A stretch of 64,000 bases of DNA from Adineta vaga. Lineage: Eukaryota > Animalia > Rotifera. Position numbers and translations under genes: made by a program. The notes under the pieces are model-generated. The model saw only the letters and a program-made list of their open reading frames with translations. It searched no databases and was not told the DNA's origin. The first letter of the stretch is position 1. Each line of letters opens with the position of its first letter. Location of the stretch: assembly GCA_021613535.1 (NCBI GenBank), contig CP075497.1:8060001-8124000 (forward strand), read 5' to 3'. This document shows, one piece after another, positions 10,134-25,088 of this stretch.

Positions 10134-11753
10134 TAAATAAAACTATCTACATAGACATTTTCCAGTATTTCGTGTTTTATACGATTAAATCGACTTCATT
10201 CTTCAGCTTTGTTTTCCATTTGAATAAAATGTTAAATGTTGACCCATACGAAGTTTTCGTAATAAAATGTCAAAGAAATTCTTTGCAATCAGTCTTCTAA
10301 AGTTTTCAAAAGATTCTATTTTCGTCCAATGAAATAACATTCGATAGAAGAGATATGCCCTTCTAATCTTTTTTTTAACTTGCGCAGTAATAGCAAGTAT
10401 GGTATTTGGGTGTATCTGTTATTTCAATTATGTGAACTGTCGAACATATTTTCATCTATCTCGCAAACAAAATCTGTTTTGCAAAAAAATAACTTATCGA
10501 AATTCTTTCCTTACATAGTCACGATGTTAATCGCATTTATTTCAAGACAAACCAGTGGAAATTCTCCACATTTTCTAGATTTTCATAATATCTGTGTTCA
10601 TCATGTATCTCTTTCGTGTTTCTGAAAGTAAAGAATTTCATTATGAAATTGAAGTCATGTCACATGTAACTATGGCAAAACATTCGATAAAGTTCATTCA
10701 TTGCTTTTTTTCTCGTTATTGAACATGCATTTCTTTGTTCATCAACATTCTGTCATATAGTGCCATCTTTTATTACAAAATCATATTGATATTCGATTAG
10801 AAAGGTAAAATTGTCGTTGTTTTTTTTCGTTCGTTCTTTCAACAGATAAATTCAATCTTATCCATATAAAAAAATCAAAATGCCAATCGTATATAATACA
10901 CAGATCTGTCTGCCTGACTCTCGATCGGTCGATAAATGTGTGAATGGATGACGATATTTTCGAAGAGAAGAAAAGAAAAGAAAAGAGAAAAGAAAAAAAG
11001 AATCAAATCACACATAATAACAGCGAATAAGAAAAATATACTAATCGATTGTTCGATTTGTTTTTATTTAGAAATTTATTAGTTACAGCATAAAAAGATT
11101 GTTTTAAAAACTAAACTTTGATTTTATTCTAAACAAAAATAATTATTCACGTATTCACACAATGCCGTGGAAAAAATACATTCCATATGGCAATTTTATG
11201 CATAGCCACACGTTCTTTTTAATGTGCGCGGCATGACTTTGAGAAAATAAATTCACTCTCTCTCTCGCTTCTGATCAGCTAAGATGACTATATGCTCTGT
11301 TTTTGTACGTATTTTCGCCTCCATATCTTTCTCTCTCTATTTTCATTTCTTGTTATCATCATCGTCCATAAGAATCAGCAGCAATTATTTATATCTACTT
11401 GTATTATTCTTTTCTATCGTTTACTAGTTACAAGTAAGCACTTTCTCTCAGTACTTCTGCAATACATATCGTTAGAACAAATACTTATTTTTGTACCATT
11501 ACTTTCGAATGACTAGACAGACGATGTAAAGAGAAGAGAAGAGACGATGAAGAAGACGAAGAAGTCGAAAGAAAAGAAAGTAGGTGTGCTTAGATTGATT
11601 GCTGAAGTCATTATAGAAATGAAAAAAATTGTTTGGGTACGTTGGCAACCACGCAACCCACTTACGTTTTGTACACGTCAATTGTTCTTTACGTCTTTAG
11701 GCGTTTTTATTACTCATACACTATCGAATACATTTCATTTACTTTTCTAGATA

Positions 11754-14347
11754 ATGCAACAATCATCAACAACAACAACAACGATGAAGTTCGTTATAAT
11801 AAAAACTTTTTTGTTGAATCTATTCAAGAGATTTTCTTTAGAACTATCCAAGTTAAAGAAGTACCATTACCGGAAAGAAGACGAAGAAAATTTACATTAT
11901 GTTCGTTACCTGTACGTCTTACTTTGGAAATTTTATTAGTTCTATTAGTATTCATACCAGCAATCATTTTTCTATTAAAATGGCCTGATGCGAAAAATTT
12001 CATCCGTGGAACAGTTCTTTCGGTAAGTTTAAATTTATAATTTAATAAAAAACAACGAAAAGAATAAATGAAATGAAATAGAAAACACGTTTGGCACCGT
12101 CATCTTATGGCTTTGAAGCTTGGTTGAATCCACCCATTACAAACATACGTGCTTATCGTTTATTCGATATTACAAATTATATGGATATCATGACTAAAAG
12201 TAATAATCCTACGGTTGAATTTCAAGAAACAAAACCAATGCATTATCGGTAAGATTTTTCTTGGCATATTAATAAAACTAATCGTTATTTTAATTCATAG
12301 AACTGTTGTAAAAAAGAATAATGTAGAATGGTTAGATGATAATAAGAATATTCATTATTCCGTTGAACGTTTATTTACACGTGAAGGAGAATTTAATGAA
12401 ACAATTGTAAATCAAGAAGGAGCTTTTCTTGATATTCTTCGTGTGGTAGGTGAATGAATGAAAAAGAATTCTTTTATCAAACAGAAATATCTTTTCTAGA
12501 TGTTCCGAACCAAATTCGGTCGTGTTGCTGATCCTGTTTTTTATATTCTTGGTGGAAATAATGCTTTTAATCATTCAAAAGCTATCGATAAATTAGAAGG
12601 TTATATTTCACCAATCTTTGCAGCTATTTCCTCAAGAATGCAAGGACCAAACCGTGATAAATATGGATTTATCTACCGAGTAAATAAACTTTGCAAATTC
12701 AAAAAACAAATTGAAATTTTTAATTTTAGTATAATGGAAGTAATGGATTTAATTTTACAATTGATACTGGTATTGATCAATCAACAAAGAAAGGTCAAGT
12801 GGTTGATTTTGCATCTGAATAGTAAGAAATGATAAAAGGATAACAATGTTTCAATCGAATGAGTTTGATTTTCTTTGTAGTACACCATTTCAAACAAGAG
12901 CAAGTGAATGGAAAACAGATTTTTTTGGTTTGTATCTTTTTTTGAAAAGATAAATTTCAAGATTTCCGTTTCTTTTTCTTTGAATAGATGGTTTAACTTT
13001 TCCACCACTTGGTGATCCGCCAACTCGAAAAGTAGTCAATGTATTTCAACCAGATTTTTGTCGGTAAGAAAATGAATGATGCAAAACGAGAATTAAAAAT
13101 TCAAGAATTTTTCTTATTCAGACCAGTACAACTTCGTTATAATCGAACTGTATCAATGTTTGGTTTTAATCGAGTACATGAATATGTACTTAAATTAGTT
13201 GATTATGAAACGTGCCCACAAATGGATGAAACTTGTTTAGAAGCTGATAAACTTGATATTACCAAATGTTTATCTTGTAAGTTAAACTTTATCTTTTCCT
13301 TTGAAAATATACGGTAGTCAAATCTCTCACTTATATAAGCGTTAAATTGTTCATTTTTATGATTTGTATGACAACTAACGATTGAGATAAAACAGATTTT
13401 TCGATTTACTTTGTAACTACACGATCACAAAAATGTCTTGTCATACGTCTGCGTTCTTTCAACTAGCTTATCACATGATAGTCATGGAGATCGTATCTTT
13501 GTAATGAAAATTTTATTTTTCTTCTAGCTGAAATTCCACCTGAAACTGTATTCTTAACTAAACCACACATGTATGGTCATAATTCCTCAGCAACAAATGT
13601 TGCCTTTACACCTGATTTTGATAAACATGAATCAACTATTTATTTTGAACCACTTTCTGGCACACCAATTCAAGCTCAATTACGTATTCAATTGAATGCT
13701 AATGCTTGGATCGATCGTATCAAAGTCGAGGACGATGGTACAACAACGTAAGATTTAAAAAAGAAAAACATAATCAAAATATATATGTTTTAGTCCAACA
13801 AAAACTCGTGCTGTTCGCCGTTTTATTCCAATGATGTGGGTTGATCAAGTAATGAGAAATTTTACAATCATTTTGAATTTCTCCTTGATTATTTTAGACA
13901 ATTACCTTAAATGATGCGACATTAAATCAATTAAAACTTGTTAGTGGTATTCTTCAAAAAGGTCACAATGCACATCAATCTTTGAAATTAGTTTATATTC
14001 TTGTGGCTTTATTTTCAACTCTTGCTATCATTGCTGTCGTTGAATTATTCTTATGGCATCGACAAGTAAGAATACATGAAAATAAAAATAAAACACACAG
14101 TTCAGTTTAAATAAGAGAATATGTATTCTATCATCATCTAGGATCGTAAATTAAAATTCGAAAAAGAACAATGTTTGTTTCATTCTATTGCTTCTTAATT
14201 GACATATTCTAGTTTTTGTTTGATTAAATTAATTGATTTCATTTCATTTTTTAGCGGAGAATGAGTCGAAGATCTTCGTACCTTTACAACGAACAGGAGA
14301 AAGCGTTGTTGAATCACACAATGACAACATCGCCAACGACAGCATAA
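11754..14347 (+). CDS. CD36/scavenger receptor class B family (LIMP-2/SCARB-like); multi-exon
   Basis: N-terminal TM, WLNPP..RAYRLFDITN, YGFIYRYNGS, DTG, FLTKPHMY, PDFDKHESTIYFEPLSGTPIQAQLRIQLN, FIPMMWVD, C-terminal TM and EQEKALL tail. Confidence 0.88.
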
Positions 14348-15966
14348 ATACCAAAGAACTTGTTTGAAAATCATCTTTGTGATATCTATTTGAACACTTA
14401 TTTATTTACACAAACATCGTTTTTTTTCTCTTCTATTATTATTCATTGTTATTCAACTCTTTCTTTTTTTCTTTTGTTTATCCTTGCATTTGAAGTCGAT
14501 TTGAGATTCTCTCAGGACAAATGAGAAGTAAAAACGAGTTCTTTCAGTGTTTTAGTTCCAGGTATATTCTCTCTCTCTCTTTCTTTCTTTCGGACTGATA
14601 AGATCTGTTTTTTTTCCTCTTTTTTTTCCATTCCATAAGGTTTATTTATGTTAACTTCTCATTGAGAGGATTGAGTGAGGGAATAGTCATTTTCAGTTAT
14701 GTATTTCATTTGCATTGGGTTGCTTTTTTTCCGTTTTTTTAAAATATATATATGAATCTCTATGAATTAAAATCTTTGATGAATTCCAATCGATCGATAT
14801 GAATGAAATTTAACTGAAAGATACATGATTCTAAAAATTGAGTAGCGTACCAAGAAATGTTAATAATATCAAAAAGTTCAATCAATGATAGATATTGATT
14901 CTCGCAAGAGGGCCGAAAACCTGGCAACTGAATATGTATTTAAAAATCGTTCAGTTTACAGGTGATGAGCCTATTTCTCGAAAATCACTTCATCGAAACT
15001 AATTGATTTGTATGATTTTAAATTGATATTAATGTCGACTAGTGGCTAATGTCGTGCAGATACGCAAATGCTTGCTTTATTTCGATTAAAACTAATCATC
15101 AGCAAACAAATGTGAACCTGTTCGACGAATAACCATGTTCATTCCAACTGATATTCTTCTACGAAAATAGATCCTTATATACTAGTTGTACTATCTTCCT
15201 GTCAAATCATTTTCCACCAATAGAATATTGAAAATGTTTATCTCTCTCATTTCGATTCGTTAAATATGCTAAGATAAATCAAGACAAGTTCATTATTTAT
15301 TCAAGAAAAGTGACTAATCGTTTTTAAAAAATGTTCATATTGCTTGACAATTTGTTTATTATTGAAAAATGATTCTTCGATGTTAACAAACCGTATCAAT
15401 CTTTGTTTCTCTTCCTCATTCTTGTACGTGACTGATAGAATGAAGTTGAGAAAATAAATTCGAGTGAATAAAGAAAGAGAAGAATCATGCTAATCAATGT
15501 CTGATGCATTGATGATGGAAGATACATCATTCATTTAATCTATTGAGAAATACAAACATGTATTGTTTTTTTTTGTACGAAAAATATTGAATAAAACCAT
15601 TGAAATGTAATTCAGTTGATTGTTCCGATAACTCACTACGTACATATTCAATGAATAGAATCATTTCTGCTATTACATGTCATGACAATGATTGATGATA
15701 TCAATTAGTTTGTTAAAGAAGTTTCTTTCATAACATAATATCAATTGATATGTGTCTGTAGGATATACTGTCACTAGTCTATTAGAGATGATGTATGAGA
15801 AGAAGAAATAAAGAAATGATTCGTATCAATTATCTTAAAGTGAATCAGTTGTTGATTTCTCTGTTCAACTAGTTCTTCTTAGATATTATTACATATTTTT
15901 ATTGAGAAGTGTGAAGAAAAATATTTATACAACACATTAGTAAAAGATGGTTTTTTTTGTGTACAA

Positions 15967-17349
15967 TCAATATGAAACCGATTCATTCAAGTTCATATCT
16001 GATTGAAAGAGATATTTTCGAAATTTAAGAATAACACGTACAGGTTCATTTGATGATTCATTCACGTCTTTCATAATTAAGTCTCGTGTTTCATTTGAAA
16101 GTCCATCTAAACAATAAGATTAATATATTCTAATATGAAACTTTGATTTTATTGTTCATTACATACTTGGTATGCAAATTTTAAATTTTCCAACTGGACA
16201 ACCTTTCGCAGTTTCGATATAACCTTGTTCTCCAGTACTTAATTGTACATTGAAATTATCAAATATTTCAATATTAGTATCTTGTTTAAATAAATCACGT
16301 GCAAGTAATGTATTTGCATCGAGAATACGATCAATAAAACCGAATTTTTCTACAAGTAATTCAACAATTGATTGTTGTTGTTCTTTATTTTTCGTATTTT
16401 TTTCTTCTGCTTTTTCAGCACGTATTTTTGCCATTGTGTATAATGATAGATAGCTATCTCGTTCTAATAAAGTTTTTTCTAATCGTTCTTGCATCTATTG
16501 AAAACGAATTCAATAAATTCTAGGATAATCGCATGAAAAGAATTTTTACTTCAAGTAATTCTTGATTTGTATCAAGATTTTTCATTTGTTCACGTAATTG
16601 ATCATTATTTTTCTTCAAAATTAAATATGTTGAACGAAATAATTCAATTGTTTCAGCATATTTCTCAAACGATTTATCATTGGTAAAGTAACGTTTCTAA
16701 AGCAATAAAAAAATAGTGCCTATGTAATATAAGATATATCGAAAGATTGTATTTTACATTCATTTCATCAAAAAATGCATCGCTAGTCATTTGTTGTCCA
16801 TCTTTGAAGAGAGTTGATGGTGCCAATGTATGAGGCACTTGTGCTATATATATATATATATATAAAACGGATAGTTTTCATTATCGATGCAAGAATTTAT
16901 TTGTACTTAATAATAATTGATTTTGCGAAAGAATCGATTGCATACGTTGTTTAAAATCATTGGTCATTTCATCAACTGTCGATGTTATTTGTTGTTCAAC
17001 ATTACGTAAACGTTCAATGTTCGCCATTTCACTCAAAGCATATGCCTAGAAGATACATCAACGAAGAGAAGAGAGTTGAATAGACGAAGTACCTCCATTC
17101 GATCGTTGGACAAACGTAATTTTTGATCCCATAGTTGAAGAATACTTGTATTTTTTTCATTAATTAAAACTTGTTTACGTTTAATAGATAAGGGTGTCGA
17201 AGGATCATTGTTTTCCTACGAAAGAAAAGTTGCTATGCTATAAAAATGATAATTGATATTAAACATACTTTAGCGCTAAGTGAACTAATAGTTGGATGTG
17301 GAGATGATGCTAATATTACATCCGATTTTGATTGATGGATAGGCTGCAT
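15967..17349 (-). CDS. Coiled-coil protein with a C-terminal eEFSec (eukaryotic SelB) domain-4-like module; about 7 exons
   Basis: Spliceable ORF from MQPIHQSK; heptad-like E/K/Q/L middle; C-terminus KFGFIDRILDANTLLARDLFKQDTNIEIF..VQLSTGEQGYI..GKFKICIP|NGLS..VILKFRKYLF. Confidence 0.75.
16845..16864. repeat. (TA)n microsatellite in an intron
   Basis: About 10 consecutive TA units. Confidence 0.9.
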
Positions 17350-18351
17350 TTTCACGTTTTATGACAATGATATAGTAGTGAAAAACTTACTATAGTTAAG
17401 TTTTATTAACAAAAGACAATGTGTCATTGTGTCTTTGTGAAATACAATTAAATATCATATGCATCTGTTATATTGTATTACTTTGAAATCTTAGTTTCGA
17501 TGAAAATTCAAAAGAAAAGTTTGAAAATATTGAGATAAATCTAAATGCATAAATGTGTTAATTTCAAATGATCTCTTTGCAATCATTTGAATCTATCAAA
17601 TACTATAGGATAGAAGTCATCATTTTTGGCTTTAAAAAAATAAAAATAAAATCATTCAAGTTTAAATTTCATTTGAACTTTAGTAATAGATTGATAAATA
17701 TTGATATATCATTGTATAGAATATGATGAACTTATTGAAGGAGAGCAGGTATAATCAATAACATTGAACAACGAATATTTGTGATCATTTTCTATGATCT
17801 GTGAGAGAATGCTTAAAACTTTTCTCTAACGTCTCTGAATAGATTGTGATAAAAACGATAGCATTTCAGATAATGAAGATAGTTTTGTAGGATATTTTTG
17901 TTGAATGATTAAATAGATAATGTCGCTTTATCAAAGAAGATTTTTCGCAGAGAAAAAGTAGTCGTTTGACTTGACTTGACTCGACTCTGTTCTTGAATTC
18001 ATTGACAGATGTCATTGATTTATTGATTAAGAATATAAATCTACTACTGACATCTATGTGATAATAAAATAAAAACGAAATGTATTTCTGTATCGAAAAG
18101 AAAAAGAAAAAAAATAATTTTATCATTGTTTTCAAATGAAATTTTTTTGAAATGCTTCAATAATTTATCATCAATACAGAAGATTTTATTTATTTCCTGT
18201 CCTATCACATTGATATTTACTATTATTTTTGCTTGCCTCTTCCTGTCCTATGTGTTCTGTTCTTTTGGAGATTCTCAAGTGATAATCGATGTCAAATATT
18301 TTCTTTATATATACTTTCTAGATTAAATCCATTAAAAGAACTAATAGAATA

Positions 18352-21300
18352 ATGATTAGTCCACTTCCTTCTTCATATAGAAATAATAGTTCTCGTCGAT
18401 TACGTTCTTCACGTTCACCACCTGGTGCTATTTCTCTTTCAAAACGATCGAAACCATCCAATTCACCTGATTTTTATGATGATCAACGTCATAAACAAGT
18501 TGATCCATATGATTATACATCGATTTGTGTCAAACAGATTAATCCAAAGATATCGGATTCAAGTGATTAATTGAACTAAAAGAAGTTGTACGATTTTACA
18601 TGTTTTTATTTGATATAGGAGTTCGAGAACTATGTGATAAGAAATTTTCGAAATATGGTCTACATTCAGTAAAGATTTTTCGTAAATCAAATGAACGTAT
18701 AGCATTTATTAATTTTACCAATGGTAAAGACGCACGAAGAGCTCGACAAGCTGAAACAGATCTTATATGGGATGGAATGGAAATTTTTCTAGAACCGTAA
18801 GTTTGCTCATATGTTAATTTCTGTTTGTTGGCATTTGTTCTATGTAAATATAGAGTTTTTTATCGGAAATCTATTCCAGCCAATCGACCAATTAGTCCTG
18901 GATTGCTTCATCAACGTTTTGTAGCTGATCACCGTTCTAGTCGTCGACCACCAGCACGACACTCTCCATCACCTCCAATAAATTATCAAAATCATTTCTA
19001 TCATCCATTACCATCACAATATCAACATCCTATGTCTCCACCACCATTTCCTCATTCTCGTTCTCGTGCTTCTCGATCATCACATCGAAATTATTCACCA
19101 TATATACCATTACCACCTGATCTAATGAACTATAATGAAAAGAAATCAAATCGTTTACAACGACGTCCATCTCCATCATCTGATCGTCGTCGTCATCATC
19201 AAAAACAAACCTCTCGACAACAACGAAGTCGAAGTCCGACAAATCGTCGATCACCATCTCATCGAGTTAATTTAGAACATGAACCTGTAATTCAACAAGA
19301 ACCATCACGCACTTTATTTATTGAAAATCTTGAACGAAATATCACTGAATCAGTTTTAGAACAAATCTTTAGTCGATATGGATTAATCGAAGATAGTAAG
19401 AAAAAGAAACCAATATTTTCTACACTAAAACTTCATTTTATCTAGTTCGTGTAAAAAATCCATCATCATCATCATCAAAACGTGCTTCAGCTATAATTAA
19501 ATTTGAAAATATGGAAACGGCTTATCGTGCTCGTCAAGCAATGGATGGTCAATCTATTGGAGAAACTATATGCAAGATTGGCTATGGTATGTATATAATC
19601 ATATTTCTTACTTTCTTTTTCCTCATTACTAATAGCTCTTAAACCTCGTTCGCTTGCATTGTATTCCAATATCTTTTATTAAGAATATGCTTGATTACTT
19701 ACTACCGCTTTCTCATTCCTATTTATCTCATATCTATTTTCACATGCACCCATCTTCTCATTTTAGAAATTTTGTAAAAAGAAAATTATATTGAGCCTGT
19801 TTAATATTAATTGGAGTATTATATCATGATAATATAGTTGCATCTGAGAGAATTGATACATATAACATAAATCCATGTAGACAAAAAAGAACAAATCTGA
19901 GTACATACACATCATCAAACGATTATAAATGACTGTGTCATTTACAAATTATTATTCATAGATATATACAGATACTTGACAAATGAAATTTCAGCATAAA
20001 TAATAAATACATATGTCAAGCGGAGTAGAGATGGTGTTTTGGTTATCATATTTTTATTATCTTATTTGATATGTTACTATATAATATGGTTTACTCATTT
20101 ACCTACATATAAATGTATATAAATCCAAGTTGGTTTTGTCGATATGAATCGATGTCACTATCATTCGTCCTTTTCGACAACTCTGTTTCTTTAATTCTTC
20201 CGTGCTTCTATCTATCTATATTTTGGACACGATATTCTTTCATTTTATAGAAAGATAATAATGATGGGTTGATTAATTGGTGAAAGACATTGCTCTATCC
20301 GTTCTACATCGAAATCTGGCTTATATCTTTCATTCGACGTCTATAAGATAATAGAAATATTCTTTTTTCTCTCTCGAACAATATCCAAAAAATATCGTTG
20401 GTCATTCATATTATCATTGTTGAGACAATTATCCTTTCTTTCTCTTGATCTATGTATAAAAATATCATGGTTTATATGAACATAACAGCGTTTGATGAAA
20501 TCTATGCCATTTGAATAATGTATATATTTTTCAGGCAGAACTGGACCAAGTAGACATTTATGGATTGGAAACATATCTAAAAATATGCGACGACGTGATC
20601 TTGAACATATATTTTCACGATATGGACCTATTGAAAAATTTCGATGTTCATTTGGTAGTTCATCGGCAATAATTACCTATGTCGATATTGAAGATGCAAT
20701 AAAAGCTCGAACAAAACTTAATGGTGCTTTACAAGTAACTGGTGGACAAGTTACTTCTAAACAATCTGATTCAATGACATTATCATCCGAAGGTACGAAA
20801 AAAAAAATATTGATAAAAATCAATCAAATCTATTACGATAATTTTTATTTTATTTTCTAGGATTTCATATTGATTATTATGATCGTTCGACAATTGTTCG
20901 TCGTTTTATCAATCGATTAGTTCAAAGTATTCCCAATCGACGTGAATCAAGATCATCATCAAAATCATCATCTCATAAAAGTTCATCTGAATCACGAGCA
21001 TCAACTCGTTCACGTTCTCCATCGAATCATCCAGATACAACAGAACAAAATAATGATACAAATGCAATTGAAAATGTTAAAACTGAAACACATTCACGTT
21101 CGCCAACACCACCGATTGCAAATACAATTAAACAACGACGATCAACAGATCGGAGTGAAACTCCTTCCTTAACAGGTTTATCTCCTGTTGCTGGACGAAC
21201 TTTTCATGGTCCATTAGGTTCTTATCTATCAACAAATGACACTACAAATATAAATAATGTCAATGCATTGATGGTTCTTTGTGAACAATTAAATTCTTCA

Positions 21301-22472
21301 GCAACACAAAATAATACAGCTTTATCAACTGTTTATCCTGTTCAATTTGTATTAAAATCTCATGCATATGATGCACGGATGCATTTTCTTGCTGGAAGTC
21401 CAACATTAGCTAGTCTTCTACTCGGTATTTATTTATTTCAATCATGATTATGAATAGAATATTTTTGATTTTATTTAGGTCAACCAGGTGATCTTGTTGC
21501 AGCAAAGACTGAATTACGAATCACACAACGACTTCGACTTGAACAACATAGATCAGATGATTTAGAAAAGAAACTTCGTGCCAATGTCATTGCTGCTCTA
21601 AGTACAGTGGGAAATGATTCAAATTCTAACTCAACTAATCATTTATCTAATGATTTAACAACCATAAGTAGTCGAAAACAACAGATACTTCCAAATCAAA
21701 CGAAATTTTCGATACTTATTGCTACACCAAAGATCCATAATCCTAATGAAATAACAAAACCAGATCAAGAAGATACAACAAATGGTCATATAAAAAATGA
21801 GAGTGCTTCACCTCCACCACCACCACCACCGTCCGATACAAATGATGAACATATAAAAATCAAAGAAGAAACCATCGATAAAACTGCTGCTGCTGATGAA
21901 GATGAAGCTATACTTTCTCGTTTAATCTCTTATTTAGTTGAGTAAGTTCAAACAAACAACTATCTTTTACATCTTTTCCAGTTTTTTTTAATAATTATTT
22001 AATAGTCAGTAGATTTCTAGAACATCTCTCTCTCTGGTAATTATGTATCTACTTCCGTGCATGTTTATCTCTAAGATATCTGCTTGTCGATGATTCAACT
22101 ATAATCATTCGAAATAGACTGATCGGAAGTCATTATGATAACTATTGAGAATTACAAAGTCACATTTGATATTATTATTTCCATTCTATTCTTTCTATTT
22201 GATTAATAAATTTCTTTTCATCCATTTCTAGAAAAGAAGCGGCTGGTGTCATTTCAATTCCGTTTTATCCAACATATCATCAGGATTACAATCATACATC
22301 TCGACAAGAAACAGCTGTATTACATATCTTTCCTCCATGTCAATTTAGTAAAAAAGTTTTAAAACTAATCTGTCCATCGATAACATTCATCGATGAATCA
22401 CATCCATCATTACATTCCAATGGCAAAGTTCTTGACGAACATTTAATGGTCGTTATTATCCACAGTGAATAA
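18352..22472 (+). CDS. RBM15: Spen-family RNA-binding protein with 3 RRMs and a SPOC domain (RBM15/Spenito-like)
   Basis: RRM1 (RIAFINF..DARRAR), RRM2 (SRTLFIENLE..FSRYGLIED..CKIGYG), RRM3 (PSRHLWIGN), SPOC (LRITQRLRL, LISYLVE|KEAAGVI, LHIFPPCQFS, HLMVVII). Confidence 0.8.
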
Positions 22473-22799
22473 TCGAATACACTTTCAGATGTTTAATAAA
22501 TCTCCTTTTCTTATCTCTTCATCGTACTTTTAACTGATATTTACGTAGATCAACTAATACTGTGATTATTACAACCAAATATTCTTTCATTTTAGTGATT
22601 TAACATTGTAGCGTGCATTTTTTTTGTACATTTTTCGTTAGGGTTTTTTTCTTTTTCTCGTACTTTTTTCATTTCGACCTACACAAACAAGTAATTTGTG
22701 TAATCAATCTCTCTCTTTTTGTTTTCTTATTTTTGCTTTTTCAATGAAACAATGTTGACGTTCTCAAATAAATCTTACTCTTGTTAATTTTCTTTTCAG

Positions 22800-25088
22800 A
22801 TGACCGATACCGATATATTAACCGATTTGGAAACATTCAATGATGCAATGGTACATTTCAAAGAAGCAGTGGATGGAAAAGGTAAAGATTTATTTTATCG
22901 AAAAATGAATCTAAATCTCATCTTTCAAATAGATCTAGAACGTATGCCTATAATTTTTAATCAATTATTAACTATTCTCAAACATATCATTGAAACTTAT
23001 CGATTAGTTGATTCGATCGATGTTTTGGAATATGCGACTAAACTAATACATCTTTTACAAGGTAAGAAATGAAGATATGAAACAAATCGTCAAAGTAAAT
23101 ATTCTATTACAGAAGTTCATTCATCTGAAAATACAAATTATGATTCTGAACCATTCTCACAAGCAATTGATCAATTAGCGTTATGTTTAAGTGCAAGGTA
23201 AGTTGATGACTTTGAATAAAAACACGAAATTATCTTCTCTCTTTGTAGAATTACAAATCGTTTTATTCTTCCATCATCAATCAATTCAGAAGCGAATGAT
23301 ACGAATGATAAAACGAATAATACGAATACATCAAATCGAGAAAGTGATGTTACATTTGATATTTTAATGAAACGTAATGATGGCGTTGATATTGCTCATG
23401 AACATGCAAAATATTTATCAAAATATATGTTTTCATTGGTACATTATGTTCAAGAACGATCCGTTGAAGAAACTAATCATGTTGATCGAACATCGAAAAT
23501 ACTTAATAATTGTTCATTATCATCATTTTTAACTACATATCGATATTTACCTGGAATAGAATTGATGATTAAACAATTAAAGAAAGATACTGAACATTAT
23601 TCAAGAATGCAATCAACATGGATGGTTTTACAAACACATGAATTTGTTGGAGTAAGAAATAACGAAAAACAATCATTCAATGAAATAAATCCTCATTTCT
23701 TCTTTCTCTTTTTTTTTAGAAACTCGATTCTTGGAGAACATATCATGATAGTGTGAGAAAAACAGTTAAAATTCAATGGGATAAATGTTTCAAAAGATAT
23801 GTAAGTCATTCCATTGACATTATTTTCTCAATTATAAAAATTCATTTTTCTAGCAACAAGCTATGCAAACTGTCGAAGAAGTTCGTACAAATTCCAAATC
23901 GATTATTCATCTTCCAACATCATCATCATCATCATCAACATCGTCAGATCCCCTTCATCATTCAGTTAATCTTTCGATTTCATTACCACATACTGCACTT
24001 CAACGCACAGCATCATCTCCACCAACAATTCATACAACTCCAACACCATTACCATTACCTTTAACAAACGAAACAAATTTACAATCAGCAAAGAATGATC
24101 TTGAATTAAAACAAAAAGAACTTCAATTAACTAAAACTGAAACATTAACAATACTTAATAAATTAATTCTCAATACAGAAAATGTTATTCTTGAATCATT
24201 AAATACATATTTTCGTTTAACTGATTTTCTAACAAATCCTGCATCAACATATATTCCACGTTCAACAAATGATTTAATATCAACTTATAAGACTTATATT
24301 CAATCACTTCCACCACCTTGTTCAAATCAAGATGAAAATTTATCAACAAAAGATAATTCAATTCGACGAATTCCTCTTATTATTCAACTCTGTTGTCATT
24401 GTATTGAACAACTTGAAGGACATAAAATCAAAGGTATCTATCGTTTATCAGGTGTAAAATCGAAAGTAGATTATCTCTGTCGACAATTTGTCCAAGGTGT
24501 TGAATTAAATGAAACAGATTTAATAAATAATTATTCAGCAATTGTACTTGCTAATGCTGTGAAAAAATATCTACGTGAATTACCTGTTCCATTATTATTA
24601 ATTGTTGATTTATCGGATTCATCAATTTTACTTCAAAATGAATTAATGAATATTGGAAAAGAAATTTATGTTTCAACAAGTCAAGTTTCATCACGTGTTA
24701 ATGATCGTTTAAGACAAATTCTTGAACAAAGAATATCTTATCATGCTAAACAAGCTTTAATTCATTTACTTAAACATTTACATTTAATATCATTGAGTGA
24801 ACAAGAAAATCAAATGTCTGCTACTAATTTAGGAATTGTTTTTGGACCGACACTCTTTAAATCACAACAACAGTAAGAATCACTTTCTCATTCAGTTTTA
24901 TATCTATTCTTTGTATTTTGATTTAGAACGGAAGATGATACAACACTTTCCACGTTACTTGAAGCACCTTATCAAGCAAAATTAATCGAATATTTAATCG
25001 TCAATGTCAATGTAAATTCTATGAAATTTCTCTCTATATTCTATTTTCTTTGTTTTTCTTTTAGGATCTTTTTATCTCAGACATATAG
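22800..25088 (+). CDS. Rho GTPase-activating protein of the ARHGAP45/ARHGAP29/GMIP type (degenerate F-BAR plus RhoGAP)
   Basis: GVDIAHEHAKYLSKYM..YVQER resembles the F-BAR start; GIYRLSG arginine finger, KKYLRELPVPL, ENQMSATNLGIVFGPTL. Confidence 0.85.

Follow-up and report, generated by a model that had tools for sequence, protein, structure and literature searches.

The fourth domain of the eukaryotic selenocysteine elongation factor eEFSec is the part of the protein that sets selenocysteine decoding apart. [quoted passage not shown] Mutagenesis of mouse eEFSec has located two of the elements involved: replacement of KKRSR (residues 536-540) by five alanines abolishes activity, SBP2 binding and Sec-tRNA binding, and replacement of LFKKE (residues 480-484) abolishes activity (PMC5089774). 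In the human protein the C-terminal segment is packed under domain 3 (PMC5059743). A barrel of similar fold is also present at the C-terminus of Bms1 and Tsr1 (PF04950), ribosome-biogenesis factors related to the translational GTPases. In the literature searched, no fusion of eEFSec domain 4, no paralogue and no detached domain 4 has been described, and no paper deals with eEFSec in bdelloids.

The gene considered here belongs to the bdelloid rotifer Adineta vaga, whose genome assembly comprises 100.8 Mb in six contigs; the window, that is, the whole stretch of DNA that was analysed, has a length of 64,000 nucleotides and corresponds to C6:8060001-8124000. The product shares with eEFSec domain 4 the RIFT-barrel fold, the core motifs and an intron position, with 45-59% identity. 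Unlike eEFSec, it has neither the GTPase domain nor domains 2 or 3, and its copy of domain 4 follows a novel stretch, predicted to be helical, of about 230 residues.

Gene structure and transcription

The coding sequence runs from 17349 to 15967 on the minus strand, in seven exons with GT-AG borders that give an open frame of 1044 nt for 347 amino acids; the peptide from which the original prediction started is encoded on this strand at the site where it had been placed. An in-frame TAA is found four codons 5' of the ATG at 17349. The features are as follows.

15879..17473, minus strand: transcribed span, defined by the longest transcript contig (1263 nt) together with shorter contigs from three other runs
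17269..17349, minus strand: exon 1, residues 1-27; N-terminus, predicted to be disordered, with an SP site and the K of a KEN tripeptide
17093..17215, minus strand: exon 2, residues 28-68; the remaining EN of KEN, a TP site, the basic patch KRK and the beginning of a long predicted helix
16907..17045, minus strand: exon 3, residues 69-115; predicted helix with a heptad-like pattern
16758..16843, minus strand: exon 4, residues 115-143; an invariant, non-helical segment, then the motif AFFDEMN
16550..16696, minus strand: exon 5, residues 144-192; predicted helix with a heptad-like pattern
16167..16494, minus strand: exon 6 as a whole, 328 nt
16369..16494, minus strand: exon 6, 5' part, residues 193-234; final predicted helix, running into the copied domain
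16167..16368, minus strand: exon 6, 3' part, residues 235-301; the linker strand with the greater part of the domain-4 RIFT barrel, where the matches to PF21131, human eEFSec and the Foldseek structures lie
15967..16106, minus strand: exon 7 as a whole; loop, last strand, tail and stop
16003..16106, minus strand: exon 7, 5' part, residues 302-336; a short acidic loop where canonical domains have the K/R-rich one, and the final strand of the barrel
15967..16002, minus strand: C-terminal tail and stop codon; an acidic tail of 11 residues replacing the canonical basic tail of KKMIQ type

The gene is expressed and spliced. Transcript contigs of 1153-1263 nt, obtained from four runs in three studies, match five of the six junctions exactly, among them the exon 1/2 junction (17269/17215), and extend the coding sequence by about 124 nt of 5' and 88 nt of 3' untranslated sequence. 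The exon 3/4 junction falls within a masked TA repeat, where the letter count fits (eight letters of the record correspond to 16836-16843). Intron 3 consists mostly of a (TA)n microsatellite (16844-16873), and it is the masking that concealed this junction. Nine variants were observed among the transcript contigs within the species, seven synonymous and two conservative.

The original prediction had asked whether transcripts would join these exons to others coding for a GTPase. The contigs spanning 15879-17473 contain no further exon, GTPase exons included, and the next upstream transcript begins at 18395 on the opposite strand; therefore, the gene has no hidden GTPase part.

Identity of the C-terminal domain

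Searches were run with the exons one by one, and the full-length protein was represented by a database orthologue, P0001 (341 amino acids, about 90% identical); exons were joined only to translate and align them, to count charges and to compute dN/dS. Exon 6 alone matches PF21131 with an E-value of 9.4e-17 (61.7 bits, for a cut-off of 27) and residues 489-554 of human eEFSec (5izk) with an E-value of 1e-10. A six-frame search of the genome with PF21131 recovers positions 10-117 of the 119 of the profile across the intron (E 5e-18, 71.3 bits); P0001 reaches 71.9 bits with the same profile, and positions 10-117 are likewise covered in a divergent relative, P0003.

Structure comparison leads to the same assignment. 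The AlphaFold2 model of P0001 contains a barrel at residues 237-329, with pLDDT of about 83-88, and its top Foldseek matches in the PDB are eEFSec structures, 7zjw_E and 5izk/5izl/5izm, with E-values from 2e-7 to 2e-5 over 95-104 columns. Bms1 and Tsr1 come second (E about 1e-3, 17-21% identity), and a shape search of the ESM Atlas returned clusters of canonical eEFSec and of Bms1/Tsr1, and no others. At the sequence level, the match of exon 6 to the Bms1/Tsr1 family PF04950 (RIBIOP_C) stays under the cut-off (E 0.046, 13.6 bits vs 25.8); thus, the barrel fold is similar to that of Bms1/Tsr1, but the sequence is clearly closer to eEFSec and the architecture is unrelated. The C-terminal region is a complete eEFSec domain 4, far beyond chance, and the reading of the last two exons that had been proposed from the eEFSec motifs is borne out by profile, sequence and structure alike.

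The domain is also detached from its GTPase, as had been claimed. P-loop, DxxGH and NKxD motifs are absent from the 347-residue product and from the transcript, and the upstream exons match no Pfam family. EF-Tu-like domains 2 and 3 are not found in P0001, where PF21131 is the sole Pfam match; the domain-3 signature, which is present in 45 of the 51 matches that have at least 50 residues upstream of the domain, is missing from the fusion protein.

Canonical eEFSec and origin of the copy

A separate full-length eEFSec, which the original prediction had proposed to look for, is present on the same contig 3.2 Mb away, at C6:4905500-4907700. It carries the P-loop (GHVDSGKT), DCPGH and NKID motifs together with domains 2 and 3, and has a domain 4 of its own. 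A gene for tRNA-Sec with anticodon TCA is found at C2:2054217-2054302 (66.7 bits).

The fusion gene derives from the 3' end of an eEFSec gene, duplicated onto a novel N-terminus that is predicted to be helical. Fusion and canonical genes alike have a phase-1 intron inside the homologous Asn codon, just after the GKFK strand; since this position is common to both, the domain was copied at the DNA level and not as a retrocopy. The nearest matches of exon 6 outside the family are fragments of bdelloid canonical eEFSec, with 53-59% identity, and the motifs NF and KYLFQ are common to the copy and to bdelloid canonical eEFSec. When 33 domain-4 sequences are placed in a tree, those of the fusion family group together (100/100) on a long stem, of 0.91 changes per column; for this clade the tree allows more than one position among the eukaryotic eEFSec domains, and bdelloid eEFSec as its sister is not rejected (AU p = 0.28). 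Homology to eEFSec is detectable from about residue 235. In the 5' part of exon 6 (residues 193-234) similarity to eEFSec is not detectable, and comparison of this half with the domain-3 end of the canonical exon revealed no convincing similarity, the two exons measuring 328 and 373 nt, respectively.

Charge and motif changes in the copied domain

The domains of the fusion family were aligned with 25 canonical domains. The positions on which the fold depends are kept, namely G-x-[IV]-[DE]-R, LF, TN-x-x-x-F, LS-x-GE-x-G-x-IE, GKFK and the last strand. Conversely, the electrostatic character of the domain is inverted: net charge ranges from -1 to -5 in the fusion family (pI 4.8-6.1), and is -4 in the gene described here, whereas all 25 canonical domains are basic, from +5 to +13 (pI 9.3-10.3). 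The shift is greatest in the linker strand (-1 vs +3.6 in canonical domains) and in the loop (-3.5 vs +0.7); for the barrel core alone the ranges overlap, from -2 to 0 in the family and from -4 to +6 in canonical domains.

These differences correspond to discrete changes. In the linker strand, VELLVEK stands in place of K-x-Y-K-x-K, with replacement of the lysines; LFKKE has become LFKQD in this gene and LFKPD or LFKAD in the orthologues; and the K/R-rich loop of 20-40 residues has been deleted, leaving a short acidic one. The most conserved loop of the canonical domain, FGQSGKFK, is changed to KGCPxGKFK, which is longer by one inserted residue and contains an invariant Cys. Finally, an acidic tail stands in place of the basic one, and domain 3, the packing site of the human C-terminal segment, is absent from the fusion protein. 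The copy has lost the elements that are tied to RNA and SBP2 binding in the canonical factor.

N-terminal region

The first 230 residues or so are predicted to be helical and match no family. A Pfam scan of the N-terminal 235 residues gave no match below an E-value of 0.3; an ESM Atlas feature search with the N-terminus returned unrelated bacterial hypothetical proteins with a best score of 0.88, which is noise level; and a profile built from the N-terminal alignment recovered, from a set of 5.8 billion proteins, solely bdelloid copies or fragments of the fusion gene. When the genome itself was searched with P0001, neither a second N-terminal copy nor an ohnologue was found.

In the P0001 model, residues 1-35 are disordered (pLDDT <50) and are followed by helices at 38-109, 135-146, 150-182 and 186-227, all with low pLDDT. 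A crude heptad score exceeds that of 99% of shuffled sequences at residues 71-117 and 139-192 only, which is a modest signal. A homodimer prediction with two copies of P0001 scored 0.03; it gives no verdict and weighs neither way on self-association. Thus, the upstream exons code for a region that is modelled as helical and is partly heptad-like; the original description of it as coiled-coil-like is reasonable, but at this low pLDDT and modest heptad signal a coiled coil as such is only putative.

Some short motifs are well conserved in this region. Residues 48-72 show no variation across the alignment of orthologues. The KEN tripeptide at residues 27-29 (17269-17271 and 17210-17215, minus strand) is interrupted by intron 1 and is followed by the TP site and the KRK patch; it is kept in the Adineta and Rotaria orthologues, whereas the fragments that diverge most (P0116, P0118) have QEN. 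In the predicted disordered N-terminus, KEN, the SP/TP sites and the KRK patch are hints of regulated turnover or nuclear import, to be taken only as a lead. The motif AFFDEMN (residues 137-143; 16758-16778, minus strand) is invariant in all orthologues and is preceded by acidic and Ser/Thr residues. It resembles the FFAT motif, EFFDAxE; position 5 is Glu instead of Ala and the motif is modelled inside a helix, so that an FFAT-like role is a weak lead only.

Distribution and selective constraint

The proteins nearest to the product of the fusion gene are those of Adineta steineri and A. ricciae. Full-length orthologues of 323-361 amino acids, with 79-93% identity, were found, as the original prediction had proposed to seek, in these two species and in four species of Rotaria (R. 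sordida, R. magnacalcarata, R. socialis and Rotaria sp. Silwood1), and more divergent fragments occur in metagenomes and metatranscriptomes; at least eight bdelloid species or lineages have an intact copy of the gene. The orthologues are deposited in public databases under the automatic name 'Selenocysteine-specific elongation factor C-terminal RIFT domain-containing protein'; they agree with the protein described here in length, exon structure and neighbours, and there is no difference in kind. One of them, P0104 (A. steineri, 361 amino acids), contains a 20-residue tandem duplication of the invariant TQVPHTLAPSTLFKDGQQMT segment, which may be an artefact of annotation or represent an allele.

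The seven-exon structure is identical in A. ricciae and Rotaria socialis. In A. steineri (L022:3642-4116) intron 5, which is kept in those two species and in this genome, has been lost, and exons 5 and 6 form a single exon of 475 nt. The order RhoGAP/RRM gene, fusion gene, CD36 gene is conserved as well. In all six pairwise comparisons dN/dS lies between 0.04 and 0.15, equally low in the N-terminal part and in domain 4, and dS reaches saturation; purifying selection is strong over the whole length of the gene. The gene is intact, as the original prediction had it; significant profile and structure matches, expression and constraint were found where their absence had been named as evidence against the prediction.

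A phmmer search of 1.84 billion representative proteins gave 103 matches, and all those with enough sequence upstream of the domain are members of the fusion family, canonical eEFSec proteins with the domain-3 signature, or obvious cases of intron read-through. Within the reach of the protein searches made, the fusion architecture was not found outside bdelloids, and in all other matches of this analysis domain 4 is located only at the end of eEFSec. Thus, the statement that no protein with this architecture had been described holds for the literature searched, where no paper was found, the automatically named bdelloid proteins being its only representatives; the architecture is new and confined to one lineage, while the domain family was already known.

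Possible function

The original prediction had offered several functional readings, which the data separate to different extents. The fusion protein could be one half of a split eEFSec, assembling in trans with a GTPase half encoded elsewhere; nothing except the detached domain itself speaks for this, and the reading is refuted by the canonical eEFSec on the same chromosome (C6, at about 4.9055-4.9077 Mb), which is complete and includes a domain 4. The C-terminal tail, which in human eEFSec lies under domain 3 (PMC5059743), is moreover replaced, and we regard such a division of labour as practically out of the question. Scarcely more credible is a gene devoid of function, be it a chimeric remnant that evolves neutrally or an artefact of annotation: lineage restriction and an orphan N-terminus would suit it, but the gene is expressed and spliced, has stayed intact with conserved neighbours and exon structure in its bdelloid lineages, and displays low dN/dS, with dS reaching saturation. 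A decoy that binds and sequesters tRNA-Sec or SECIS RNA directly, the leading idea of the original prediction, or an RNA-binding module in general, would be consistent with the contacts made by eEFSec domain 4 and its linker (PMC12861234, PMC12254956) and with the retention of the fold. This possibility is disfavoured by a net charge opposite to that of every canonical domain compared, by the replacement of the linker lysines (VELLVEK), by the altered LFKKE and the deletion of the K/R loop; the Pfam scan found no further RNA-binding domain, and direct binding of these RNAs appears improbable.

A modulator of selenocysteine insertion deserves more weight, although we still consider it unlikely. 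According to this explanation domain 4, perhaps displayed in multiple copies on the stalk, would compete with eEFSec for a protein surface of the ribosome or of SBP2, for instance tuning UGA recoding under stress. The domain stems specifically from eEFSec domain 4 and retains the core positions that are most conserved in the family, it is under strong constraint, and the genome uses selenocysteine, since tRNA-Sec and eEFSec are present. However, the basic loop for SBP2 and Sec-tRNA binding is missing and LFKKE is changed (PMC5089774), the domain is acidic, and the long stem branch suggests that the function has shifted and was not retained. In addition, when penta-alanine mutants of domains I-III of mouse eEFSec were stably expressed in rat McArdle cells, the cells kept their selenoprotein profile, which the authors took as absence of a dominant-negative effect; domain IV mutants were not included, so that the bearing of this result is indirect (PMC5089774). 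The more specific form of this idea, a stand-alone, multimerised and charge-inverted copy of domain 4 that vies with eEFSec for a protein docking site on the ribosome or on the SBP2 complex and acts in trans on selenocysteine decoding, is somewhat less likely again; if true, it would be the first case of a dedicated protein that antagonises or tunes UGA recoding and is made from a domain of the factor itself.

The positive charge for holding RNA has been lost, and the protein is therefore probably put to a use other than the regulation of selenocysteine insertion. The reading that we prefer, to which we would give an even chance, is that of an exon-shuffled and repurposed domain, most likely a protein-binding head carried by a helical stalk that may be oligomeric. 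The 3' end of an eEFSec gene, comprising domain 4 and its internal intron, was copied as DNA and became attached to a new N-terminal region of predicted helices. The barrel has kept the residues that build the fold and shed the electropositive elements with which eEFSec holds tRNA-Sec, SECIS and SBP2. On the preferred reading it would now serve as a protein-binding head; the helical stalk below it would probably self-associate, and the disordered N-terminus could regulate the protein. We infer the protein-binding role of the barrel by exclusion. As far as sequence can tell, it has most likely lost RNA binding and takes no part in UGA recoding, even if, given the overlapping charges of the barrel cores, the domain may preserve some residual contact with RNA or the ribosome. 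The identity of 45-59% to canonical domain 4 that persists after long divergence could also reflect a retained shared partner.

The gene offers a clean case of exon shuffling in which a lineage-specific gene is made from a core translation factor, and a natural experiment in which the features of domain 4 needed for its fold, which are kept, are separated from those for RNA and SBP2 binding, which are lost. If the protein, against the odds, still touches the selenocysteine machinery, it would represent a new kind of regulator; if it does not, it is an instructive example of a domain put to new use in a single lineage.

Neighbouring genes

Upstream and divergently oriented, at about 18395-25000 on the plus strand, lies an RRM/SPOC gene, with a RhoGAP gene either behind it or fused to it; one junction here (18562/18619) is present in transcript contigs. 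At the orthologous loci, RRM/SPOC and RhoGAP form one long gene in some public annotations and separate genes in others. The downstream neighbour, at about 11600-13750 on the plus strand, looks like a gene of the CD36/scavenger-receptor family, as indicated by the PF01130 label of the syntenic gene at orthologous loci.
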